From contig JBLWGC010000047.1 in NCBI GenBank assembly GCA_048772705.1, forward strand, positions 1 to 64,000: 64,000 bases of DNA, given 5' to 3'. Positions 43,951 through 57,399 of the stretch are shown piece by piece. Each line of letters opens with the position of its first letter. Positions within the stretch are counted from its first letter, which is position 1. Under the pieces are notes generated by a model. That model was not told the DNA's origin, ran no database searches, and was given only the letters and a program-made list of their open reading frames with translations. A program made the translations under genes and the position numbers. The stretch is from Leidyana gryllorum EB-2025a. Taxonomy: Eukaryota > Protista > Apicomplexa.

Positions 43951-44315
43951 TACCTGGGTGTTAGCGAAGAAACGGAGTCGCCATGGCTAGCCTTAGTTCA
44001 CAATCCGGTGCCCACACTTGGCCACCCAGAAAGTACATTCCGGTTTCCCCCCTTACTACCCCTGCCTACCATACCCGAAGAAAGACAACGCTGAGCTCCT
44101 ACAGTCGGCGTCCAGAAGAGTACTGTCAATGAGCGACAGGCACTACATAATACACTGAATTTCACGCACCGATCAAACGGGTCGGTCGGTTCGGTTTAGG
44201 GTTGTTGGCCGGCGACGAAGTACGTTGCTTGTCAACAAGAAGTTTATGAAGCCTTGTCTCCGTCGAGATGATTCAAAAACAACTTTCATTCTTAGCTCCT
44301 CTTTTTCCTTTGATC

Positions 44316-45362
44316 ATGGTGAACCCTCAGCTGACTCCTGTAGCTCCTGGTGGCGTACTGACCAGTGCAATCAACGGTCGCCAAGCTACATTCGATGTTA
44401 CTGCTGAATACCCCATCAATGCCGTCATTCCGGCCATGTCCGTTCCCTCCCCTCTTATCCCTGGCGATGCCACCCAGTACGCTGTGATTCGCTCCAACGT
44501 CACCGAAGACCAACAAGGGAACTTGGCCAACTCGATGGTCTCTGGCTTCCCGGCCCCCGCCGCGGATCGTGCCAACCACTACCGCTTCGTCTCTCTCTCC
44601 GCTGGAGACTTCATGTGCGGTATCTCGGCCACCGATCTCTTCAAAGAAGGCTGGGGCTTCCGCGGAGCCTTCCTGAACAGCTCCAATGGAGGACTTGTGG
44701 GTCGCGGTTTGCTCAAGGAGGAATTCTGCCCCAGTTTCCACAACCAAGGCAGCGTCGTGGATTGGATCATGGAAGTCAGTGGCAGCAAAGTGTCTGTCTA
44801 TATCCTGCGGGACGGACACCCATGCGGTCCAGCTTTCATCCTGGACTTCACCGGACGTGAAGGAATGATCAGTTCGCTCCGTCCTGCTGTCTCCTTCTCG
44901 GATAGCAACATGGACGTGGCAGTGGTCGCCTTCCAGTCGGCTACACCCAGCTCCGCCTACTACGAACGCTCCGAGACCCCAGTGGACCCCAAGAACCCGC
45001 TTCTGGGAAAATGGGCTGCCAACCTTGCTGAGTGGCAAGGACTCACCTTCCCTGGCCAGTTCGTCATTGAAATCAGCCCCAGGGGAATCCACGCTCGCGT
45101 GATGAACTCCATGAACTTCCCCTGCGAATTTGGCCCTGATGGCTCAGTTCGACGCACTGGAGCTGGCGCCTCTACACGGATGATGCCCATTCCTCCTTTC
45201 GATCAAGCAGAGATGGCCGTCACTGCCTTCCTCAGCGACATCACCAGATATGGTCTTGCTGCTGACGTGCTCTCACTGTTCACTTCCACTGGTACACACA
45301 CTTTCACCCGATTTACGCCCCGAGCTGACCCCGTCACGGAGAATCCCCTTCTGGATCTTTGA
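44316..45362 (+). CDS. SPRY-like domain plus META/HslJ domain protein
   Basis: GSVVDWIMEVSGSKVSVYILRDGHPCGPAF...LRPAVSF (SPRY-like); LLGKW...VMNSM...ASTRMMP...AEMAVTAFL (META). Strong codon bias. Confidence 0.7.
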   Translation: MVNPQLTPVAPGGVLTSAINGRQATFDVTAEYPINAVIPAMSVPSPLIPGDATQYAVIRSNVTEDQQGNLANSMVSGFPAPAADRANHYRFVSLSAGDFMCGISATDLFKEGWGFRGAFLNSSNGGLVGRGLLKEEFCPSFHNQGSVVDWIMEVSGSKVSVYILRDGHPCGPAFILDFTGREGMISSLRPAVSFSDSNMDVAVVAFQSATPSSAYYERSETPVDPKNPLLGKWAANLAEWQGLTFPGQFVIEISPRGIHARVMNSMNFPCEFGPDGSVRRTGAGASTRMMPIPPFDQAEMAVTAFLSDITRYGLAADVLSLFTSTGTHTFTRFTPRADPVTENPLLDL

Positions 45363-45603: not shown

Positions 45604-46950
45604 ATGATCGCTCGTTCCACTTTCTTCTTACTTGGTGCTGTAATTGGCGTCTCTCGGGCCCAGGAGGAAGAATGTTACCTCCCCATCGATGTGATGTTCC
45701 TCCAAGACACCACCGGTTCATTTGAAAAGGATCTCCCGATTGTGGTCGGTCAGATCGACGATATGGTGGCGGCAATCTTAGAACAGAACCCCGAGTCTTA
45801 CTTTGGTGTGGCTGAGTTCAAAGACAAACCCTATTATCCCCTCGGCCAACAGGACTCTGACTTCTGTTACAAACTCAATGGTGCTCTAACGGACTCCGTC
45901 TCGACTTTCAAAGCCGATTACGACAAGCTGTACGCCTCCGGTGGCGGTGATCTTCCAGAAGCTCAGTTCCAGGCGCTGATTGACATTGCTCAGGACTCTA
46001 ATGTCGGATGGCACCCGATTGTCTCCGATACCCGCGCTGGCAATGGTGTTGGTGCTCACGTAGTCATCATGTCCACTGATGCGCCTCCCCATCTACCGGG
46101 CGACATGGCGCTTCTCTCTCAATTTGAGACCGTCCCCCAGGGCCTCCCCGCCAACCTCGGCACTATCAGCAAGCCGGATGTCAACACTTCTTGCCGCAAC
46201 TACGACTACCCGAGCGCAGACCAGATGGCCGCTGCACTGAAGGCGCAAAACATCTATCTGGCTATCCTCACCCCCGCGTGGCAGAACATCACTTCGGCCT
46301 GGGAGTGGGTCAATGAGGATCTCCTCGGACAACCCTCCGACTTCTACCAATACATCGCGGAGGACTCCTCAGATATCATGTCGAGTGTTCTGAAGGTCAT
46401 CAAGGCTGTCACTGAGACAGCGTGTGCTACCACCACTACCACCGCTGGACCCACCACCCCGGCGCCTTCGACCACAACCACCACCACCGCAGCCACCACT
46501 ACGACCCCTACTACCACCACTCCAACCACTACAACCACCACTACGACGACGATCACCACCACTGAGGCTCCGACCACTACGACGACCACCACCACTGAGG
46601 CCCCTACCACCACTACCACCACCACTGAGGCCCCTACCACCACTACCACCACCACTGAGGCCCCTACCACCACTACCACCACCACTGAGGCCCCTACCAC
46701 CACTACGACGACCACCACCACTACGACGACCACCACCACTGAGGCCCCTACCACTACGACGACCACCACCACTGAGGCCCCGACCACTACGACCACGGCG
46801 GAGTCGACTACCGCAACTGAGCCCCCTCACTGCTACGACCCCTGCCCTCCTCACCCGGAGCCGTGCTGCTTCCACCCCGCAATGGTGATTAAGGTCAACA
46901 ACAGACCTCAGAAGTTGGTGATTGACTACGAAGCTCCAGTTGCACACTGA
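45604..46950 (+). CDS. Secreted integrin-beta-like VWA / Thr-rich mucin protein, copy 1
   Basis: Signal peptide; DVMFLQDTTGS MIDAS-like motif; TTTEAP stalk; Cys-rich tail. Confidence 0.9.
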   Translation: MIARSTFFLLGAVIGVSRAQEEECYLPIDVMFLQDTTGSFEKDLPIVVGQIDDMVAAILEQNPESYFGVAEFKDKPYYPLGQQDSDFCYKLNGALTDSVSTFKADYDKLYASGGGDLPEAQFQALIDIAQDSNVGWHPIVSDTRAGNGVGAHVVIMSTDAPPHLPGDMALLSQFETVPQGLPANLGTISKPDVNTSCRNYDYPSADQMAAALKAQNIYLAILTPAWQNITSAWEWVNEDLLGQPSDFYQYIAEDSSDIMSSVLKVIKAVTETACATTTTTAGPTTPAPSTTTTTTAATTTTPTTTTPTTTTTTTTTITTTEAPTTTTTTTTEAPTTTTTTTEAPTTTTTTTEAPTTTTTTTEAPTTTTTTTTTTTTTTTEAPTTTTTTTTEAPTTTTTAESTTATEPPHCYDPCPPHPEPCCFHPAMVIKVNNRPQKLVIDYEAPVAH

Positions 46951-47035
46951 GGTGTATTAGTTTAAGTGACCGTTTCAACTACCAAAGACAGACATTGAGT
47001 AGAATAATACAACTAAGTAGCAAAGCAGCCGATCT

Positions 47036-47083
47036 CGGTAGAAACCAGACGACACTGAAGTCCGGTAGAAACCAGACGACACT
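47036..47083. repeat. 21-bp direct repeat CGGTAGAAACCAGACGACACT, two copies, period 27
   Basis: Exact copies at 47036-47056 and 47063-47083. Confidence 0.9.
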
Positions 47084-47203
47084 AAAGAGACGCCACTGAG
47101 GGGAGACAGCTCTGGTGCCAGGTGGCCCAGCTGAATCATTCAGAATTCCATCTCATCAGATTTACATCTCTCACTAGTTTTAAGCTCACTCTCCTCTCTG
47201 TCA

Positions 47204-48424
47204 ATGCGACTCTCTACCCACCTCTATGTTGTAGCTGCCGTCATCGGAGCTCATGCACAAGAAGAGGAGTGTTACCTCCCCATCGATGTGATGTTCCTCC
47301 AAGACACCACCGGTTCATTTGAAAAGGATCTCCCGATTGTGGTCGGTCAGATCGACGATATGGTGGCGGCAATCTTAGAACAGAACCCCGAGTCTTACTT
47401 TGGTGTGGCTGAGTTCAAAGACAAACCCTATTATCCCCTCGGCCAACAGGACTCTGACTTCTGTTACAAACTCAATGGTGCTCTAACGGACTCCGTCTCG
47501 ACTTTCAAAGCCGATTACGACAAACTGTACGCCTCCGGTGGCGGTGATCTTCCAGAAGCTCAGTTCCAGGCGCTGATTGACATTGCTCAGGACTCTAATG
47601 TCGGATGGCACCCGATTGTCTCCGATACCCGCGCTGGCAATGGTGTTGGTGCTCACGTAGTCATCATGTCCACTGATGCGCCTCCCCATCTACCGGGCGA
47701 CATGGCGCTTCTCTCTCAATTTGAGACCGTCCCCCAGGGCCTCCCCGCCAACCTCGGCACTATCAGCAAGCCGGATGTCAACACTTCTTGCCGCAACTAC
47801 GACTACCCGAGTGCAGACCAGATGGCCGCTGCACTGAAGGCGCAGAACATCTATCTGGCTATCCTCACCCCCGCGTGGCAGAACATCACTTCGGCCTGGG
47901 AGTGGGTCAATGAGGATCTCCTCGGACAACCCTCCGACTTCTACCAATACATCGCGGAGGACTCCTCAGATATCATGTCGAGTGTTCTGAAGGTCATCAA
48001 GGCTGTCACTGAGACAGCGTGTGCTACCACCACTACCACCGCTGGACCCACCACCCCGGCGCCTTCGACCACAACCACCACCACCACTACGACCCCTACC
48101 ACCACCACCCCAACCACTACAACGACAACGACAACGACCACCACTGAGGCCCCTACCACTACCACAACGAGCACCACTGAGGCCCCTACCACCACAACGA
48201 CCACCACCGCAGCGACAACGACTACGACGTCCACCACTGAGGCCCCTACCACCACTACGACTACAACTGCCGCCGAGTCAACAACCGCAACTGAGCCCCC
48301 TCACTGCTACGATCCCTGTCCTCCTCACCCGGAGCCGTGCTGCTTCCACCCTGCAATGGTGATTAAGGTCAACAACAGACCTCAGAAGTTGGTGATCGAC
48401 TACGAAGCTCCAGTTTCGCATTAA
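47204..48424 (+). CDS. Secreted VWA / mucin protein, copy 2
   Basis: Core nearly identical to copy 1. Confidence 0.9.
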   Translation: MRLSTHLYVVAAVIGAHAQEEECYLPIDVMFLQDTTGSFEKDLPIVVGQIDDMVAAILEQNPESYFGVAEFKDKPYYPLGQQDSDFCYKLNGALTDSVSTFKADYDKLYASGGGDLPEAQFQALIDIAQDSNVGWHPIVSDTRAGNGVGAHVVIMSTDAPPHLPGDMALLSQFETVPQGLPANLGTISKPDVNTSCRNYDYPSADQMAAALKAQNIYLAILTPAWQNITSAWEWVNEDLLGQPSDFYQYIAEDSSDIMSSVLKVIKAVTETACATTTTTAGPTTPAPSTTTTTTTTTPTTTTPTTTTTTTTTTTEAPTTTTTSTTEAPTTTTTTTAATTTTTSTTEAPTTTTTTTAAESTTATEPPHCYDPCPPHPEPCCFHPAMVIKVNNRPQKLVIDYEAPVSH

Positions 48425-48637
48425 ATGAAATTTAGATTAGTGCAAGTTAGAAGAACGCAGAGACCTTTACATCTTCACTGTAATGAGCGGACATTTGAAT
48501 CTGCCGAATTGGCAATCAGTTGTCAGAAAGGAGACTGTCGCCAGGGGAGACAGGGAGTCATCCTAGATAGGGCCACATTATTATTGTATTCAGCCTGCTC
48601 CTTCTCTTCTTTCCTCTTGTTCTCTCACGTGACAAAG

Positions 48638-49804
48638 ATGAAGTTCTCCAGACCTCTTATCCTTACCGCAGTCTTGACTCTCAATGGACGTGCTGAGGAA
48701 GAGTGTTACCTCCCCATTGATGTGATGTTCCTTCAAGACACCACCGGTTCATTTGAAAAGGATCTCCCGATTGTGGTCGGTCAGATTGACGATATGGTGG
48801 CGGCAATCTTGGAACAGAACCCCGAGTCTTACTTTGGTGTGGCTGAGTTCAAAGACAAACCCTATTATCCCCTCGGCCAACAGGACTCTGACTTCTGTTA
48901 CAAACTCAATGGTGCGCTGACTGGCGAAGTTGCTACTTTCAAAGCCGATTACGACAAGCTGTACGCGTCCGGTGGCGGTGATCTCCCCGAGGCTCAATTC
49001 CAGGCTCTGATTGACATTGCTCAGGACCCCACTGTCGGATGGCACCCGATTGTCTCCGATACCCGCGCTGGCAATGGTGTTGGTGCTCACGTAGTCATCA
49101 TGTCCACTGATGCGCCTCCCCATCTACCGGGCGACATGGCGCTTCTCTCTCAATTTGAGACCGTCCCCCAGGGCCTCCCCGCCAACCTCGGCACTATCAG
49201 CAAGCCGGATGTCAACACTTCTTGCCGCAACTACGACTACCCGAGTGCAGACCAGATGGCCGCTGCACTGAAGGCGCAGAACATCTATCTGGCTATCCTC
49301 ACCCCCGCGTGGCAGAACATCACTTCGGCCTGGGAGTGGGTCAATGAGGATCTCCTCGGACAACCCTCCGACTTCTACCAATACATCGCGGAGGACTCCT
49401 CAGATATCATGTCGAGTGTTCTGAAGGTCATCAAGGCTGTCACTGAAACAGCGTGTGCTACCACCACTACCACCGCTGGACCCACCACCCCGGCGCCTTC
49501 GACCACAACCACCACCACCGCAACGACAACGGTAGCTCCGACCACCACCACTGCAACTACGACCACCACTGAGGCTCCAACCACTACTTCCACCACCACC
49601 ACAGCGACAACGACAAGTGCTGTGACCACTACCACCAGTACAGTGGCAAGCTCAACAACCACTACACAGGCTGAGTGCCACAACCCCTGTCCCCCTCATC
49701 CCGAGCCCTGCTGCCCGCATCCTCAGGACTGCTGTCCCGCCATGGTGGTCAAGATTGGGGAACGGGCCCAGAAGGTTCTGATTGATTATAAAGATGAACA
49801 ATGA
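48638..49804 (+). CDS. Secreted VWA / mucin protein, copy 3
   Basis: The ATG at 48638 gives signal peptide MKFSRPLILTAVLTLNGRA; same core. Confidence 0.9.
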   Translation: MKFSRPLILTAVLTLNGRAEEECYLPIDVMFLQDTTGSFEKDLPIVVGQIDDMVAAILEQNPESYFGVAEFKDKPYYPLGQQDSDFCYKLNGALTGEVATFKADYDKLYASGGGDLPEAQFQALIDIAQDPTVGWHPIVSDTRAGNGVGAHVVIMSTDAPPHLPGDMALLSQFETVPQGLPANLGTISKPDVNTSCRNYDYPSADQMAAALKAQNIYLAILTPAWQNITSAWEWVNEDLLGQPSDFYQYIAEDSSDIMSSVLKVIKAVTETACATTTTTAGPTTPAPSTTTTTTATTTVAPTTTTATTTTTEAPTTTSTTTTATTTSAVTTTTSTVASSTTTTQAECHNPCPPHPEPCCPHPQDCCPAMVVKIGERAQKVLIDYKDEQ

Positions 49805-50001
49805 ATTGTTTAGATAGCAAGACTTGAAATGTTAGTTAAGAAACTGAGAACCAGATCGAAAGATGCTTCTGTTCCGAGTCGTGAAGCGGCTCGAATGGTC
49901 AATAATGATATGTTTGGGGCCAGAGACGGTGGATCATCAATCTGACGCTGTAGACGAAAAGTAATAGATCACTACTTCTCTTGTGCATTTGACGTCAGAA
50001 G

Positions 50002-51342
50002 ATGAAGCTGGGCAACTTGTCTCTCGTCTGCGCTCTTTGCGTCGCCCATGCACAAGAAGAAGAATGTTACCTCCCCATCGATGTGATGTTCCTCCAAGAC
50101 ACCACCGGTTCATTTGAAAAGGATCTCCCGATTGTGGTCGGTCAGATCGACGATATGGTGGCGGCAATCTTAGAACAGAACCCCGAGTCTTACTTTGGTG
50201 TGGCTGAGTTCAAAGACAAACCCTATTATCCCCTCGGCCAACAGGGCTCTGACTTCTGTTACAAACTCAATGGTGCTCTAACGGACTCCGTCTCGACTTT
50301 CAAAGCCGATTACGACAAGCTGTACGCCTCCGGTGGCGGTGATCTTCCAGAAGCTCAGTTCCAGGCGCTGATTGACATTGCTCAGGACTCTAATGTCGGA
50401 TGGCACCCGATTGTCTCCGATACCCGCGCTGGCAATGGTGTTGGTGCTCACGTAGTCATCATGTCCACTGATGCGCCTCCGCATCTGCCGGGCGACATGG
50501 GACGGCTCTCTCAGTACGATACGGTTCCCCAAGATCTTCCAGATAACCTCGGCACTATCAGTCAGCCAGATGTCAACACCTCCTGTCGCGACTACGACTA
50601 CCCAAGTGCAATGCAAATGGCCAACGCGTTGAAGGCGCAGAACATCTATCTGGCCATCCTCACCCCCGCGTGGCAGAACATCACTTCGGCCTGGGAGTGG
50701 GTCAATGAGGATCTCCTCGAACAACCCTCCGACTTCTACCAATACATCGCGGAGGACTCCTCGGATATCATGTCGAGTGTTCTGAAGGTCATCAAGGCTG
50801 TCACTGAGACAGCCTGTGCTACCACCACTACCACCGCTGGACCCACCACCCCGGCGCCTTCGACCACAACCACTACCACCGCAGCCACCACTACGACAGC
50901 CACCACTACGACCCCGACCACTACAGCGACCACTACAACGACCCCAACCACTACAACGACAACCACCACCACTGAGGCCCCTAACACCACTACGACCACC
51001 ACCACCCCCGCAGCGACAACGACCACCACGACTGAGGCCCCGACCACTACCACAACGACCACCCCTACCACTACGACCACTACCACCGCCGCAGCGACAA
51101 CGACTACGACTACCACGACTGAGGCCCCTACCACCACTGAGGCCCCTACCACCACTACGACCACCCCTCAGCCCACTACGACTACAACTGCCGAGTCAAC
51201 AACCGCAACTGAGCCCCCTCACTGCTACGATCCCTGTCCTCCTCACCCGGAGCCGTGCTGCTTCCACCCTGCAATGGTGATTAAGGTCAACAACAGACCT
51301 CAGAAGTTGGTGATCGACTACGAGGCGCCCGTCTCAGCATGA
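50002..51342 (+). CDS. Secreted VWA / mucin protein, copy 4
   Basis: Same core with one divergent internal patch. Confidence 0.9.
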   Translation: MKLGNLSLVCALCVAHAQEEECYLPIDVMFLQDTTGSFEKDLPIVVGQIDDMVAAILEQNPESYFGVAEFKDKPYYPLGQQGSDFCYKLNGALTDSVSTFKADYDKLYASGGGDLPEAQFQALIDIAQDSNVGWHPIVSDTRAGNGVGAHVVIMSTDAPPHLPGDMGRLSQYDTVPQDLPDNLGTISQPDVNTSCRDYDYPSAMQMANALKAQNIYLAILTPAWQNITSAWEWVNEDLLEQPSDFYQYIAEDSSDIMSSVLKVIKAVTETACATTTTTAGPTTPAPSTTTTTTAATTTTATTTTPTTTATTTTTPTTTTTTTTTEAPNTTTTTTTPAATTTTTTEAPTTTTTTTPTTTTTTTAAATTTTTTTTEAPTTTEAPTTTTTTPQPTTTTTAESTTATEPPHCYDPCPPHPEPCCFHPAMVIKVNNRPQKLVIDYEAPVSA

Positions 51343-51595
51343 AGTCTGTCAATTGAAAAGAAGTTCTGTTCGGATTAGCTTAGTAGATCAAAAAGATGTA
51401 TAGTTTGAACAAACAACGCACAACTGAAATGTGTAGATGAAATCTCTGGGAACGTGACTCGCCTTACACTGGGCTGATCTAAGTTTGGGGCATCCCTGAC
51501 ACACAAAACTGCCCGAGTGGTTGTCAAGAATTTGAGGCAAGAATTCGTCTACTTCTTTCAAGTGTTCTTTTTAAGTTTCAATCTCTTTGTACACG

Positions 51596-53752
51596 ATGAA
51601 ATTGAATCTGCTTCCAATTGCTCTGATCGGAACGACCAGTGCGGAAGACAAATGTTTTCTTCCGATCGATGTGATGTTCTTACAAGATACCACTGGCTCT
51701 TTTAAAGAGGATCTGCCGTTAATCGTACGGCAGATCCCAGACATGGTGTCTGCGATATTGGAACAGAATCCTCATTCGTACTTTGGTGTGTCGGAATTCA
51801 AAGATAAGCCTTTTTACCCTCTTGCCGAACAAGATGATTTTTGCTATAAATTGAATGGACCCTTATCACAATCAATCGACAGATTCCAACAAGATTATTC
51901 TAAATTGTATGCTTCGGGTGGCGGAGATATTCCGGAAGCACACTACCAAGCGTTGATAGATGTGGCTCAGGACTCTGAGGTCGGCTGGCACCGCATCGTC
52001 GCCGATCCCAAGATTAGCGATGGGGTAGGGGCCCGTGTCATCATCATGTCGACAGACGCCCCCCCTCACCTGCCTGGAGACATGGCCAAGTTGTCAATGT
52101 ATGACACGGTGCCCCAAGGACTCCCGGCCAATCTCGGAAGAATCAGTTTGCCCGACCCCGGCGTTTCGTGTCGCGAGTACGATTTCCCCAGCCCAGCTCA
52201 GGTCGCCCAAGCTCTCAAGGATGAACACATCTACCTGGCAATCCTAACTCCCGCGTGGCAGAACATCACCGGCGCCTGGAAGTGGGTGAATGAAGATCTC
52301 CTCGGTCAACCAGCTGACTTTTATCAATTCATAAACGAGGACTCGTCGGATATGTTGGATGGTGTGATGCGAGTTCTCAAATCGGTCACAGAGACAGCTT
52401 GTGCCTCGCCTTACGAAGAAACCACTCCGACTCCTACAACCCTCTGGAGCACACCGAGCACAACTACCGAGGGCACTCGACTGACCTCTATCGGTGCCAC
52501 CAGCTCGGCAGAGGGAACCCGCGTTACCTCTGGAGGGACCATCGGAAGCGAGACGGTTGATACTGGAATCACTGGAACCACCACTACTGGCTTCGGAACC
52601 AAGTTGACCTCTATCGGTGCCACCAGCTCGGCAGAGGGCACTCGACTGACCTCTATCGGTGCCACCAGCTCGGCAGAGGGAACCCACGTTACCTCTGGAG
52701 GGACCATCGGAAGCGAGACGGTTGATACTGGAATCACTGGAACCACCACTACTGGCTTCGGAACCAAGTTGACCTCTATCGGTGCCACCAGCTCGGCAGA
52801 GGGAACCCGCGTTACCTCTGGAGGGACCATCGGAAGCGAGACGGTTGATACTGGAATCACTGGAACCACCACTACTGGCTTCGGAACCAAGTTGACCTCT
52901 ATCGGTGCCACCAGCTCGGCAGAGGGCACTCGACTGACCTCTATCGGTGCCACCAGCTCGGCAGAGGGAACCCGCGTTACCTCTGGAGGGACCATCGGAA
53001 GCGAGACGGTTGATACTGGAATCACTGGAACCACCACTACTGGCTTCGGAACCAAGTTGACCTCTATCGGTGCCACCAGCTCGGCAGAGGGCACTCGACT
53101 GACCTCTATCGGTGCCACCAGCTCGGCAGAGGGAACCCGCGTTACCTCTGGAGGGACCATCGGAAGCGAGACGGTTGATACTGGAATCACTGGAACCACC
53201 ACTACTGGCTTCGGAACCAAGTTGACCTCTATCGGTGCCACCAGCTCGGCAGAGGGAACCCGCGTTACCTCTGGAGGGACCATCGGAAGCGAGACGGTTG
53301 ATACTGGAATCACTGGAACCACCACTACTGGCTTCGGAACCAAGTTGACCTCTATCGGTGCCACCAGCTCGGCAGAGGGAACCCGCGTTACCTCTGGAGG
53401 GACCATCGGAAGCGAGACGGTTGATACTGGAATCACTGGAACCACCACTACTGGCTTCGGAACCAAGTTGACCTCTTTGGGCGGACCGACTGAGGTCGAC
53501 CCCCTTTCGACAACCACAAGTCTGCGAGTGGACACACGTGGAACTTCAACAATTCCCAGCCTCACTGGGGAGCCTGCCGGGTCGATGCCCACATTGGATG
53601 TGACAGCTCCTGAGTGTAACACGTGTCTGCCGGGGTATCCCGAGCCTTGTTGCCCGCATCCGCATTGCTGTCCTGCAGTGGTGATACAATTAAGCCAACG
53701 ACCCAAGAAGGTATTGTTTGAATTCGCGGATCATACATTAGCTGGAAAATGA
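51596..53752 (+). CDS. Secreted VWA protein, copy 5 (divergent, with a G/T/S tandem-repeat stalk)
   Basis: MKLNLLPIALIGTTSA signal peptide; homologous VWA; 42/123-bp repeats; Cys-rich tail. Confidence 0.9.
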   Translation: MKLNLLPIALIGTTSAEDKCFLPIDVMFLQDTTGSFKEDLPLIVRQIPDMVSAILEQNPHSYFGVSEFKDKPFYPLAEQDDFCYKLNGPLSQSIDRFQQDYSKLYASGGGDIPEAHYQALIDVAQDSEVGWHRIVADPKISDGVGARVIIMSTDAPPHLPGDMAKLSMYDTVPQGLPANLGRISLPDPGVSCREYDFPSPAQVAQALKDEHIYLAILTPAWQNITGAWKWVNEDLLGQPADFYQFINEDSSDMLDGVMRVLKSVTETACASPYEETTPTPTTLWSTPSTTTEGTRLTSIGATSSAEGTRVTSGGTIGSETVDTGITGTTTTGFGTKLTSIGATSSAEGTRLTSIGATSSAEGTHVTSGGTIGSETVDTGITGTTTTGFGTKLTSIGATSSAEGTRVTSGGTIGSETVDTGITGTTTTGFGTKLTSIGATSSAEGTRLTSIGATSSAEGTRVTSGGTIGSETVDTGITGTTTTGFGTKLTSIGATSSAEGTRLTSIGATSSAEGTRVTSGGTIGSETVDTGITGTTTTGFGTKLTSIGATSSAEGTRVTSGGTIGSETVDTGITGTTTTGFGTKLTSIGATSSAEGTRVTSGGTIGSETVDTGITGTTTTGFGTKLTSLGGPTEVDPLSTTTSLRVDTRGTSTIPSLTGEPAGSMPTLDVTAPECNTCLPGYPEPCCPHPHCCPAVVIQLSQRPKKVLFEFADHTLAGK
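52469..53476 (+). repeat. Coding minisatellite of 42-bp (14 aa) and 123-bp (41 aa) units
   Basis: Unit starts at 52469, 52511, 52676, 52799 and onward; order S-L-S-L-L-S-L-S-L-L-L(partial). Confidence 0.95.
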
Positions 53753-53970
53753 GTCATTTGAGTGGCTGACTTAGCACGGAAGCGAAGGTGTTGACTTCGA
53801 CTTTTGAATTCGGAATTAGGCTGGATCGACTTTGAGACATATTGTGCACACCGGAGCATCTCGTGCTCTGGTGAACCTTTGCATTCAGAGAAGAGATAAA
53901 GGAGACAAGGGCTTATAGGAGACGGGTCTCATTGGCATAGACAGATTGGTTTTTTTTGCTGTGTTGAGTG

Positions 53971-56900
53971 ATGATGGACACTTCAACCACGAATGAGCAA
54001 TCACCTACAACTGGTCAGGGGAGTTTCAAGAGGAGAGACGCTCTGCTCGAGTACCAAAGGGAGGTAGAGAAGATTTGGGAAGAGCGTAAGCCTTTTGAGG
54101 TTGAAGCTGACCCCACCAAGACGGATGAAACCTTCTTCGTCACGTTCCCATTCCCCTACATGAATGGTCGTCTCCACCTTGGGCATGCGTTCTCACTGAC
54201 CAAAGCCGAGTTTACAGCTCGCTATCAACGCCTTCTGGGCAAAAGGGTGTTGTGGCCTTTCGCTTTCCACTGCACCGGTATGCCCATCGCTGCCTGTGCT
54301 GACAAGTTGAGGAACGAATTGGAGGATGCCGCCGCTGGTGGCCCGAAGAGGGTTGATGTGGGAGAGGAGGAGGCCGCCGAAGTCGAACTGACAGCGAATG
54401 TTACTTTCGCGGGGAGAAAGTCGAAGGCCGTAGCCAAGACTGGCACGGGGAAAACACAGTGGGAGATTTTGAAGGACATTGGTGTCCCGACTGAGGAGAT
54501 TCCCAAGTTTGCTGATGCATCTCATTGGCTGAAGTATTTCCCCCCCATCGGAAAAGCCGACTTGAAATCCTTTGGGGTCTCAGCCGACTGGCGTCGCTCT
54601 TTCATCACCACTGACGTCAATCCGTATTTCGACCGGTTTGTCAAATGGCAATATCGACTGCTGCTCGAACGTGGTCGAGTCAAGTTTGGGCTGAGACCGG
54701 CTGTATTCTCTCGGTAAGATTATGAAAAGAGAGACTCGGTGTAATCTGCTTTCGCCGCCTGCAGAATAGACAATCAGCCATGCGCTGACCACGATCGTGC
54801 TGCTGGTGAGGGGTCCAACCCTCAGGAGTACACAATGCTCAAGCTCACTGTGTCTGAGGTCCCGGAAGAGTGGATTCAGAAGTGTCCGCAACTGAAGGGA
54901 GCTCGAATTCATCTCGTTGCTGCGACGTTGAGGCCAGAGACAATGTACGCACAAACCAACTGTTTTGTTCTGCCGTCGGGTGTGTACCACGTGGTACCCG
55001 CTTTCGAGCGTCAACTTGACATGAAGGATATCGTTGCGGACCAGAAGGGCTACGTGGCCGTCAAAACGTTGACAGCAGACGAGGTGAAGGAGCAGTGCAA
55101 GGACTACTATGTCTGCTCTGAGCGAAGTGCTGCCAATATGGTTTATCAGGGTATAATTCCAGCTGCTCCCGTGAAGATGCCATGCGTCTACTCTGAGCCA
55201 CACGTACTCTTCGATGTCACTGGGAAGGAGCTCATCGGTCTTCCCCTCAAGGCACCTCTCGCCCAATATGAGTCTATCTACGTTCTCCCGTTGCCCACCA
55301 TCAAGATGGACAAGGGAAGCGGCGTGGTAACGTCTGTTCCGTCGGACGCTCCCGATGACTACGCCATGCTCAAGGACTTGCAGACCAAAGCAAAGCTGCG
55401 TGAAGAGTACGGTGTCAAGGAAGAGTGGTGCAACAGAGACCTCGTTGAAGTCATTGAGATCCCCGGTTACGGACGACGGGCGGCCGCCGACCTGTGTGAG
55501 AAAGCTAAGGTCTCGAGCTACAAGGATGAGACTAAGCTCAAAGCCATCAAGGACGAAGTCTACCAGAAAGGTTTCTATGAGGGAGTTATGCTTTTGGGTC
55601 AGTATGCGGGCATTCCAGTCACCGAAGCCAAAGATAAAGTCAAGGCTGATCTGATTGAGCAAGGGAGCGCCATCCGCTACATGGAGCCAGAGCGCAAAGT
55701 TCTGTCTCGTTCCGGAGACGACTGCGTAGTCGCTCTCTGTAACCAATGGTACAGCGACTTTGGCAACCCCGAATGGACTGCAATGGTCGTCAAACATGTG
55801 GAGAACCCCGAAACCTTCGAGGCATACGGTCAGCGCTCTGCTTACGTCAACGTCGCGAACTGGCTGGAGGGCTGGGCGTGTTCCCGTAACTACGGATTGG
55901 GCACTGTGCTCCCCTGGGAAGCTGAGCAGGGAAACAGAGTGCTCATTGAGTCTCTATCCGACTCAACTATCTACTTCGCCTACTACACTGTGTCCCACTT
56001 CTTCCAGTCAGATATGTACGGCGCGACTGCTGGATCTATGAACATCAAACCGGAGCACCTTCGTGATGCCGAGTTCAACTACATCTTCTGTCAGACTGAT
56101 GAAATGCCGGCTGACAGCGAAATCAGTCAAGAGAATCTCAAAACACTCCGTAGCGCGTTCGAGTACTGGTATCCGATGAGCCTCCGTGTTAGTGGCAAGG
56201 ATTTGGTGCCTAACCATCTCACAATGGCACTCTTCCACCACGCAGCGATTTGGCCCCACCGCCCCGATCTGTGGCCTCGTGGATACTACGTGAACGGTCA
56301 TCTGCTTCTTGATGATCAGAAGATGTCCAAATCCACTGGGAACTTCCTGACTGTCTCTGACTCTGTACAACAATATGGAGCAGATGCCACTCGTTTGGCT
56401 TTGGCTGAAGCGGGAGACAACGTGGATGACGCCAACTTTAGAACCACCACCGCAAACGGATGTCTGATGAAGTTGTATGTTCTCGTTCAGTACGCTCAGG
56501 ATCTGGTCAAGAAGAAGGAAGCTGGAACTTTGTACACCGGTCCGAAGCGCACCATTGATTTGATGTTCGAGAACGAATGCATTGATCGCATCATCAAAGC
56601 GAAACAAGCCTTTGACGGTATGGTGATGCGTGACGCTCTCAAGTTTGGTGTTTATGAGCTCAACTCGTTGAAAGATACTTACCGCCTCATGCTGCCTGTG
56701 ACTGAAGAGGTCCACCAGGAATCCATCTTCAAGTGGTTGGAGTGGTTGACCATCGTGGCATCCCCGATCGCCTGCTTCACAATGGAGTACATCAACACAG
56801 TGGTGCTGAAGAAGGAGCTCTCCATCACCAAAGCACTGTGGCCCGATGTCAAGGACGGGTTTGATGGCAGTCTGCACAGGAAATACCAACTGTTGATTGA

Positions 56901-57399
56901 TTTTGCCGAAGACCAACGGAGAGCGTTGGAGAAACAGAGTGCCCCCAAGAAGGGCAAGGGAGGAGCGGAGCCCGAGAAGAAGGCTCAGATGGAGAAAATG
57001 ACAGTGTACGTGGCGGCTGCCTACCTGCCGTGGCAGCAGGAGGTGCTGAAGGTTCTGCAGACTCTGGAGGTCGACGAGACTACCAATACGCCGAAAGACC
57101 CGAAATACATAGAGGTCGTGAAAAATGCCGAGAGTGTGAAAGCGATGGACAACAAGACAATGAAATTGGCATTGGGTTTCGCATCCTTCCAAATCAAGGA
57201 GGAGCTGAGACTACGTGGAGTATCGGCCTTGTCTCTCGAACTGGGATTCGACGAAGCCGATTGGTACAAACAGAACGAAGAGTACTTATTGAGAGTCATT
57301 GGACTAAAGGAAATGCACGTGGTACCGTGGACCGAAAGTATGTTGAACGAGACCAAGAAAGCAGCTACTCCAGGAAAGCCTATCGTATTGTTCAGCTAG
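53971..57399 (+). CDS. LARS: Cytosolic leucyl-tRNA synthetase (intron 54714-54764)
   Basis: FPYMNGRLHLGH, QPCADHDR across the splice, ATLRPETMY, GVVTSVPSDAPDDY, KMSKS. Confidence 0.97.

Follow-up and report, generated by a model that had tools for sequence, protein, structure and literature searches.

A tandem array of five genes in the gregarine Leidyana gryllorum predicted to encode secreted proteins with an integrin beta-I-type VWA head, a mucin-like stalk and a Cys-rich tail

The DNA studied here is the forward strand of contig JBLWGC010000047.1 of Leidyana gryllorum EB-2025a (GCA_048772705.1), a gregarine that parasitises the gut, positions 1–64,000; this whole stretch of 64,000 nucleotides is referred to as the window. 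Between positions 45604 and 53752 its + strand contains five intact, intronless open reading frames, identified from an ORF list with translations and named g1–g5. An initial annotation of the window had proposed a five-gene array with these limits, and both ends match the start of g1 and the stop of g5 exactly. Gene starts were set at the ATG preceding a signal-peptide-like N-terminus; in the case of g3 the listed ORF opens at 48425 and the ATG at 48638 is the one that yields a signal peptide. The genes next to the array code for an F-box protein, a ZIP transporter, an acyltransferase and a leucyl-tRNA synthetase that is split, none of which suggests a functional connection.

All five genes lie on the + strand and share one order of parts. 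In g1 (45604–46950, 448 aa) a signal peptide (45604–45660) is followed by the beta-I-type VWA head (45661–46428), a Thr-rich stalk (46429–46830; 134 aa, 69% Thr) and a Cys tail (46831–46947). The corresponding parts of g2 (47204–48424, 406 aa) are at 47204–47257, 47258–48025, 48026–48304 (93 aa, 67% Thr) and 48305–48421, and those of g3 (48638–49804, 388 aa) at 48638–48694, 48695–49459, 49460–49675 (72 aa, 61% Thr) and 49676–49801 (6 Cys). For g4 (50002–51342, 446 aa) they are at 50002–50052, 50053–50820, 50821–51222 (134 aa, 67% Thr) and 51223–51339. The divergent member g5 (51596–53752, 718 aa) has its signal peptide at 51596–51643, its head at 51644–52405, a Thr/Gly/Ser stalk at 52406–53614 and a tail with 6 Cys at 53615–53749; its head is 72–74% identical to the g1–g4 heads at the protein level. 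As the initial annotation had stated, the heads are about 255 aa long and contain the motifs DVMFLQDTTGS, FKDKP, GGDLPEA, VGW, STDAPPHLPGD and DYPS, with g5 having GGDIPEA for GGDLPEA and DFPS for DYPS.

The predicted signal peptides were recognised by sequence pattern alone (a basic N-end, a hydrophobic core and small residues at –3/–1), and the residues after the predicted cleavage site are QEEEC, EEEC or EDKC. A Kyte-Doolittle scan bore out the claim that transmembrane (TM) segments are absent from g1–g5, with all 19-residue windows past residue 30 scoring 1.06 or less, and the same scan detected no hydrophobic C-terminus of the GPI type. The products are thus predicted to be soluble head-mucin-tail molecules without a membrane anchor.

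The stalks of all five are long Pro/Thr/Ser-rich regions of the kind that defines mucins. The description of the stalk as Thr-rich holds for g1–g4 (72–134 aa, 61–69% Thr) but only loosely for g5, where Thr, Gly and Ser make up 62% of 403 aa. Much of the g5 stalk consists of tandem repeats (52469–53476, +) in 123/165-nt (41/55-aa) units, the copies of which are 99–100% identical in DNA. The tail is a family-specific C-terminal module of about 40 aa. That of g2 (48305–48421, +) has a Cys/Pro/His knot, C-x3-C-PPHPEPCC, followed by the terminal motif (hydrophobic x3)-x-(I/L/F)-x3-P-x2-(L/V)-x-(I/L)-(D/E)-(Y/V/F); equivalent modules close the other four genes, and a tail profile matches g1–g5 at E 5e-15 to 1e-12. 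With the tail alone as query, an Atlas language-model search gave no usable match. In an AF2 model of full-length g3 the stalk is disordered and the tail has no secondary structure (pLDDT 55–72); from its sequence pattern the terminal motif may form a beta-hairpin, which is absent from this model. Each tail has 4–6 Cys; as all Cys counts are even, no Cys is evidently left unpaired to link one molecule to another. We also considered a head-to-tail polymer in which an acidic residue of the tail serves as the ligand of the head's metal site (MIDAS), and rejected it because the tail alignment has no universally conserved acidic residue.

The top Pfam match of all five products was Integrin_beta (PF00362), with 44.2, 44.6, 42.3, 44.5 and 31.5 bits for g1 to g5 against a cut-off of 24.8, and a sequence search of the PDB returned matches to integrin beta only. 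A profile of the head family matched integrin beta-2 at E 1.2e-40, covering positions 3–233 of 241. The initial annotation had suggested a Foldseek comparison with integrin beta I and other VWA domains; when this was done with an AF2 model of the g2 head (pLDDT 96.4, pTM 0.94), the best 50 matches were integrin beta chains only (TM 0.71–0.80, E 5e-19). With VIA-align the same model gave Z 25.1–28.7 over 210–236 residues against beta-I domains, compared with Z 16.9 or less over about 180 residues for the best non-beta-I VWA and Z 15.2 over 179 residues for the VWA of PfTRAP. An Atlas search agrees with the beta-I assignment, and the head has the DYPS-bearing long insertion that is specific to beta-I domains. 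Sequence identity to integrin beta is only about 21%; the likeness is beyond chance, as judged from Pfam E-values of 2e-11 to 2e-07 across g1–g5 and from the Foldseek E-value. Pfam, profile, Foldseek and VIA-align therefore concur with the original proposal of a beta-I-type domain rather than the alpha-I type of TRAP/MIC2. Together, the sequence comparisons and the predicted structure indicate that the head is a stand-alone VWA of the integrin beta-I type.

To compare the metal sites, we scored the relevant columns across 91 family members, giving the MIDAS, ADMIDAS and SyMBS ligands in beta-3 residue numbering. These columns are conserved over the family. The MIDAS motif D-T-T-G-S, at residues 32–36 of g2 (47297–47311, +), is the same in all five genes, and the ligand set is complete, with D-x-T-x-S (Thr at the second ligand position) and the equivalents of E220 and D251, which are kept in 82/91 and 88/91 members respectively. 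In the F-E-K-D-L that follows the motif in g2, a Lys occupies the D126 position, and the acidic ADMIDAS pair (D126, D127) reads K-D in g1–g4 and E-D in g5, so that the D127 equivalent is retained; the family consensus is D-D. At the SyMBS (D158, N215, D217, P219, E220), every member has the Asp of the DKP motif, and D, P and E are retained, with Gly at the N215 position in 89/91 members. Because of this Gly and the Lys at the ADMIDAS Asp of g1–g4, metal use and the type of ligand may differ from those of integrins. The specificity-determining loop (SDL) of integrin beta is about 17 residues longer than that of the head; when the family profile is aligned with beta-2, the loop of the latter faces a gap of 17 residues. 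The head also has four gregarine-specific Cys, which amount to two Cys pairs beyond those of integrin beta.

By their predicted domain content, the g1–g5 proteins are not integrins. The fold of the head is that of integrin beta, DYPS-bearing insertion included (Z 25–29 over 229–236 residues), but the PSI, hybrid, I-EGF, beta-tail, TM and NPxY cytoplasmic parts of the beta subunit are all missing, and a Pfam scan of g1–g5 found VWA-type domains alone and no PSI, hybrid, I-EGF or beta-tail domain. In integrins the ligand pocket is common to the alpha and beta subunits, whereas g1–g5 have no detected alpha partner: six-frame searches of the 15.5 Mb assembly with integrin alpha (PF08441) and FG-GAP (PF01839) gave no match, a search that divergent genes may escape and in which the PF08441 control was silent. 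Integrin-beta-like VWA domains also occur in other non-integrins, the Dictyostelium Sib proteins (PF24909) and mouse Pactolus (PDB 2iue), both of which sit in the membrane and have stalks or tails that resemble those of beta integrins. The Pactolus I-domain aligned with the g2 head model at Z 25.1, and the Sib Pfam model had no match to g1–g5 up to E 1. As a comparison, TRAP/MIC2 proteins likewise hold a secreted MIDAS-type VWA head off the parasite surface, but their head is of the alpha-I type, and their TSR domains, TM segment and Trp-containing acidic tail have no counterpart in g1–g5; the TSP1 domain had no Pfam match in these proteins. The layout of a Thr-rich PTS stalk between globular or Cys-rich ends is shared with mucins (Cryptosporidium gp900/gp40-type and animal gel-forming), to which g1–g5 have no sequence relation, their ends being a beta-I VWA and a new tail rather than VWD or cystine-knot domains.

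The mature parts of the copies are much alike. Over 750 nt of the head, g1 and g2 show just 3 differences, each of them a synonymous change; differences between g1 and g4 are concentrated in nt 400–600 and those between g1 and g3 in nt 200–350. Inter-copy identity begins at the mature N-terminus and stops at the stop codon, and each copy has its own flanks, signal peptide and stalk length. The flanks are unalignable: the g1–g2 spacer (46951–47203), which contains a 27-nt tandem repeat (47036–47087), does not align with the other spacers (48425–48637, 49805–50001 and 51343–51595). Mosaic gene conversion accounts for near-identical mature parts beside unrelated flanks and signal peptides, and is the mode by which the array evolves. 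Near-identical repeats assemble poorly, and the initial annotation had raised the possibility that the copies are assembly artefacts. We give almost no credence to an artefact or to dead copies, since all five frames are intact, differences are largely synonymous, comparable arrays exist at other sites of the genome, and the copy-specific flanks, signal peptides and stalk lengths show that these are not duplicates of one sequence. The same comparison bears on whether the proteins are secreted host-directed factors, with heads that serve as anchors or decoys by binding immune proteins, the peritrophic membrane or the matrix of the host gut, and with copies that diversify under host pressure. 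The expansion is lineage-specific, and the patches that vary between copies fall in surface loops, the long beta-I insertion included; however, the changes are more often synonymous than not (synonymous to non-synonymous 3:0, 17:5 and 22:12), conversion patches explain the pattern better than diversifying selection, and there is no known host ligand. We consider this role very improbable.

The array is part of a larger family. A head profile gave 61 matches in the genome, corresponding to about 50 heads, and a tail profile found at least 21 tails. Some paralogues in the same genome combine a beta-I VWA with a Gly/Ala-rich TM segment and a conserved acidic C-terminus, and these TM-anchored, TRAP-like proteins belong to the same family as the soluble g1–g5. 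The tail module also ends a PAN-domain mucin and headless mucins. All five genes have the four head Cys and the tail with Cys knot and terminal motif by which we define the gregarine VWA-mucin-tail family, and they are lineage-specific tandem paralogues within this large family of secreted modular glycoproteins. A conserved tandem array was not found in Gregarina niphandrodes, where GNI_097130 has no second copy beside it and is incomplete. No paper on this family was found in the literature searched, in line with the earlier suggestion of a poorly described system. The further suggestion that the system is distinct stands insofar as it is undescribed but not insofar as it was taken to be self-contained, the array being one cluster of a family of about 50 heads.

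Homologues with 44–61% identity occur in transcriptomes of trophozoites picked by hand (PMC8051059). Transcription in trophozoites favours a place in the coat or mucus over the cyst wall, without deciding between them. Repetitive stalks and Cys-rich modules are typical of wall proteins, and g1–g5 could be structural components of a wall, that of the gametocyst or of the oocyst, in which Cys-rich tails cross-link a resistant matrix and VWA heads act as assembly modules. We find this improbable given the abundance of the trophozoite-derived homologues, the even Cys numbers and the lack of Pfam similarity to known oocyst wall proteins.

From these data we infer that g1–g5 encode an adhesive mucin of the coat or gliding mucus. 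The explanation we favour, and think probable, is that they are secreted modular glycoproteins in which a beta-I head, an O-glycosylated stalk and a tethering tail give rise to an adhesive mucin layer. After removal of the signal peptide, the stalk would receive O-GalNAc glycans in the Golgi; ppGalNAc-transferases, which initiate such glycans, are encoded in the genome, where an enzyme with GT2, Glyco_transf_7C and Ricin-lectin domains (G000:C202) has the architecture of a ppGalNAc-T. The glycosylated stalk would become a stiff mucin rod of roughly 20–100 nm, and the head would hold an acidic side chain of its ligand through the MIDAS divalent cation, as in integrin beta-I domains, yet with no alpha subunit taking part. 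The tail would tether or cross-link the molecule, its candidate partners being the cell coat, a protein anchored in the membrane or further copies, and the outcome would be an adhesive layer that covers the trophozoite, forms part of the shed gliding mucus, or both. The tethering role is a guess, because the tail model has low confidence and the tail had no Atlas match. That gregarines have an adhesion system founded on stand-alone beta-I-type heads with bacterial closest relatives instead of TRAP-type heads, in which g1–g5 are the long-sought protein of the mucus trail or coat and are tethered or polymerised by their tails, is a tentative and rather doubtful proposal.

In Toxoplasma, soluble micronemal proteins ride on TM partners. 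By analogy, g1–g5 might be soluble passengers of adhesin complexes whose tails dock on membrane-anchored escorters such as the TM beta-I VWA paralogues, which would make them cell-bound adhesins for gliding or attachment rather than free mucus. The presence of such paralogues in the same genome is consistent with this, as is the position of the tail, a portable conserved module at the extreme C-terminus behind varied heads; the fold of the tail, however, has no confident model. We regard this as unlikely, and it overlaps with the adhesive mucin that we favour, the final location of the molecule being the sole difference.

The means by which eugregarines adhere and glide are still debated. What their mucus trail consists of is not known (PMC3849649), and a survey of marine gregarine genomes (Porospora), in which canonical adhesins were few and mucins absent, put forward alternative machinery (PMC9250747). 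The family described here supplies abundant testable candidates, including soluble mucins whose head is putatively adhesive and metal-dependent, paralogues that are anchored in the membrane and have TRAP-like tails, and a portable tail shared with PAN-headed mucins.

It also shows that a eukaryote lineage beyond the groups with described integrins has the integrin beta-I domain as an independent module. Outside gregarines, the head is most closely related to bacterial RTX/PEP-CTERM "Integrin_beta VWA" proteins, with 33–36% identity; in an exhaustive search a Methylobacterium protein matched at E 1.6e-41. Pairwise, the g2 head scored 102 bits (33% identity) with the bacterial domain P0092 and only 28.7 bits with human beta-3, and the bacterial domain itself scored 101 bits with integrin beta-2; on these scores we reject the acquisition of an integrin gene from the animal host. 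The affinity to bacterial proteins bears on the origin of the integrin head. Like g1–g5, the bacterial proteins (Cyanobacteria, Rhodobacterales, Methylobacterium and Myxococcota) have a stand-alone head with the same shortened loop and no alpha subunit, and we found no paper on their function. By contrast, they have RTX/T1SS, cadherin-like or PEP-CTERM parts of their own and neither the mucin stalk nor the family tail, and RTX repeats and the PEP-CTERM sorting signal had no Pfam match in g1–g5. The four head Cys are present in 52–63 of 64 non-bacterial members and in 0–1 of 27 bacterial ones. In a tree of 91 rows, which is unrooted and contains no opisthokont integrins, the bacteria form a single clade (SH-aLRT 98) that Polyplicarium-type proteins adjoin, and the g1–g5 group and a second group with the tail stand separately.

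The open reading frames (ORFs) listed for the window include five open, intronless genes between 45604 and 53752 on the plus strand, which bears out the five-gene array proposed for this interval in the initial annotation. With the start codon of each gene set at the ATG ahead of a signal-peptide-like N-terminus, these are g1 (45604–46950, 448 aa), g2 (47204–48424, 406 aa), g3 (48638–49804, 388 aa), g4 (50002–51342, 446 aa), and g5 (51596–53752, 718 aa), all on the plus strand. Each product has four parts: a 16–19-aa signal-like leader whose final small residue precedes QEEEC, EEEC, or EDKC; a four-Cys head of ~255 aa; a stalk; and a tail of 39–45 aa with 4 or 6 Cys. The mean of 19-residue Kyte–Doolittle windows past residue 30 never exceeded 1.06 and therefore g1–g5 contain no transmembrane (TM) helix or hydrophobic GPI-type end. 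The predicted combination of signal peptide, VWA head, and Cys tail without a TM segment was thus recovered in all five, with the signal peptide taken as the signal-like leader. A Thr-rich stalk had also been described. This holds for g1–g4 (72–134 aa, 61–69% Thr), but the 403-aa stalk of g5 instead consists of Thr/Gly/Ser-rich repeats of 41/55 aa whose DNA is 99–100% identical. The stalk regions also yield overlapping Val-, Gly/Arg-, and Pro-rich ORFs on either strand; these are by-products of the ACC-type codon repeats. The spacer between g1 and g2 carries a 27-nt tandem repeat (47036–47087, 1.9 copies, 96% match).

For all five proteins the first Pfam match was PF00362 (Integrin_beta), covering positions 4–235 of the 248 in the profile. 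Relative to a 24.8-bit cut-off, the scores were 42–45 bits for g1–g4 and 31.5 bits for g5. A sequence search of the PDB returned integrin beta chains only, the best being beta-3 (E 6.6e-6), and a profile of 91 family members matched integrin beta-2 over positions 3–233 of 241 (E 1.2e-40). The g2 head was modeled by AlphaFold2 without templates (pLDDT 96.4, pTM 0.94), and integrin beta chains made up all of the first 50 Foldseek matches to this model (E down to 5e-19, TM-score 0.71–0.80). In a structure search independent of Foldseek, beta-I domains gave Z scores of 25.1–28.7 with 210–236 residues aligned, whereas all other VWAs reached at most 16.9 with ~180 aligned. As a comparison, the head of Plasmodium TRAP gave a Z score of 15.2 with 179 residues aligned, well below the beta-I domains. 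A search of the ESM Atlas agreed with this picture. Both sequence and predicted structure indicate that the head of g1–g5 is an integrin beta-I-type VWA. This part of the initial annotation survives, since grouping with TRAP-type or ordinary VWAs was checked and was not seen with Pfam, the PDB, Foldseek, or the Z scores.

The states of the metal sites were read from the family alignment and from the profile alignment to integrin beta-2, using the beta-3 residue numbers of the integrin literature. The MIDAS is complete, with D-T-T-G-S and the equivalents of E220 and D251 kept in 82–90 of the 91 family members. At the SyMBS, the Asp of the DKP motif is invariant and the equivalents of D217, P219, and E220 are present, with N215 replaced by Gly in 89 of 91. 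At the ADMIDAS, D127 is present and the D126 position is Lys in g1–g4, Glu in g5, and Asp in most of the family. The specificity-determining loop of integrin beta-2 is ~17 residues longer than that of this family in the profile alignment. The four head Cys occur in 52–63 of the 64 non-bacterial members versus 0–1 of the 27 bacterial ones. From their positions we infer two disulfides: one would tie the domain's N-terminal end to its C-terminal end, and the other would connect the two beta-I-specific loops. PSI, hybrid, EGF, and tail domains were all absent from the Pfam results for g1–g5. When the entire 15.5 Mb assembly was searched in six frames, no FG-GAP repeat was found and, in a search run without a positive control, no integrin alpha Ig domain. 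The products of g1–g5 therefore use an integrin beta head, yet are not integrins.

Over 750 nt, the mature g1 and g2 heads are distinguished by 3 substitutions, each of them synonymous. The g3 and g4 genes are 91–97% identical to g1/g2 and to each other, and g5 is ~70% identical to the others. Identity between the copies runs from the EEECY codons to the stop codon; neither the spacers nor the codons of the signal peptide can be aligned. The differences are mosaic, with 39 of 43 between g1 and g4 falling within head nt 400–600 and most of those between g1 and g3 within head nt 200–350. Such a mosaic argues that gene conversion has acted repeatedly on the part coding for the mature protein; it speaks against a recent duplication of the whole unit and against the assembly artifact considered in the initial annotation. 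In the 91-row family tree g2 and g5 are mutual closest relatives (support 100), so the array arose within this lineage.

The family profile gave 61 matches in the same genome, corresponding to ~50 heads, and PF00362 alone gave 26. Further tandem sets are present on contigs C104, C33, C36, and C133, as are multi-head giants. The C104 set (C104:833300–839600, stretch L008) is a second conversion-homogenized array of four tandem, almost identical genes of 415–417 aa spaced 1437 nt apart, each with a beta-I head, mucin stalk, and tail, and with a longer N-terminal leader than in g1–g5. The 579–650-aa products of three paralogues (C230:1019400–1022600, L005; C51:224400–227900, L006; C51:150900–153900, L007) combine a signal peptide and a PF00362 head with a TM segment rich in Gly and Ala and an acidic, conserved C-terminus whose last residues are MFQ. 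These resemble TRAP in layout, but lack TSR domains and have a beta-I-type head. In one less favored alternative, the array products would be surface-bound passengers of TM escorters.

The tail profile found 21 copies in the genome. One is in a secreted 551-aa protein (C104:1062800–1066000; L013 949–2604, minus strand) where a PAN domain (PAN_4, 28 bits) is followed by a Thr/Pro mucin stalk and then the same tail as in g1–g5. At C194:145800–150200 (L012) lie two adjacent genes for acidic repeat proteins that are rich in Ser/Thr, lack a head, and have this tail motif at their C-terminus. The tail is thus a portable module and, given the PAN-headed protein, the stalk-plus-tail cassette is common to different adhesive heads. 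The tail gave no confident fold in the predicted model and no neighbor in the ESM Atlas.

An exhaustive search returned 1368 proteins at E ≤0.001. The closest (44–61% identity) belong to gregarines of cockroaches (Gregarina spp., Protomagalhaensia, Blabericola) and to Gregarina niphandrodes, whose protein GNI_097130 carries the annotation "hypothetical"; remoter members occur in Porospora cf. gigantea and Polyplicarium. One record from a public run (P0070, 853 aa) is a fusion of a gregarine-type beta-I head with the oxidase domains FAD_binding_4 and BBE. Two records from the springtail Orchesella dallaii (P0026 and P0027, 2876 and 3619 aa, on contigs of 0.7 and 5.9 Mb) contain 10–12 beta-I-like VWA repeats with 29–30% identity to the g2 head; these could be a true arthropod gene family, a transfer, or a contaminant.

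The nearest non-gregarine relatives of the head are secreted proteins of bacteria (Methylobacterium, Rhodobacterales, Nostocales, Myxococcota, and others), in which RTX repeats, cadherin-like domains, or PEP-CTERM anchors accompany this head. In pairwise comparisons, the g2 head scored 102 bits (33% identity) against a bacterial domain and 28.7 bits against human beta-3, and the bacterial domain scored 101 bits against human beta-2. These scores make it unlikely that a host integrin gene was captured. In the 91-row tree, which is unrooted and made up of family members without animal or other eukaryotic integrins, a single clade with short branches unites the bacterial sequences (SH-aLRT 98), and Polyplicarium-type proteins adjoin it (support 99); separate from these are the group of the window genes and another group whose members bear the tail.

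The trophozoites and gamonts of eugregarines release mucus into the grooves that separate their epicytic folds, and the trail they leave is of unknown composition (PMC3849649). In the Porospora genome paper, mucins were not found, canonical adhesins were few, and integrin-like proteins go unmentioned (PMC9250747). Homologues of the array proteins are present in transcriptomes assembled from hand-picked trophozoites (PMC8051059). Glyco_transf_7C occurs at no fewer than seven loci in the genome, and at C202:11500–14300 (L003 884–2323) a 480-aa ORF has the GT2, Glyco_transf_7C, and Ricin-lectin architecture of a polypeptide GalNAc-transferase. Taken with the protein architecture, these observations lead us to favor a role as an adhesive mucin, in the surface coat, the gliding mucus, or both, over a cyst-wall component or a host-directed factor. 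In such a mucin, a rod that bears the conserved terminal module would present a metal-dependent adhesive head, and the tail may act as a tether or cross-linker. We saw no description of the family in the literature searched on gregarines in connection with integrin or von Willebrand proteins and on PF00362 in bacteria, or in the chromerid and Porospora genome papers; an integrin-beta-like protein of cyanobacteria is already known, and gregarine homologues are listed as "hypothetical" in public records. The family is a putative VWA adhesin/mucin whose beta-I head stands alone and whose tail is new. It bears on gregarine motility and on how the integrin head has evolved.

Immediately before the array, on the plus strand, is a 364-aa ORF (44268–45362) with a weak META-domain match that is below the cut-off (E 0.004). 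A leucyl-tRNA synthetase gene lies at 53968–57399 (plus strand) and is split into two ORFs (53968–54717 and 54835–57399), probably by a short intron or a frame change.
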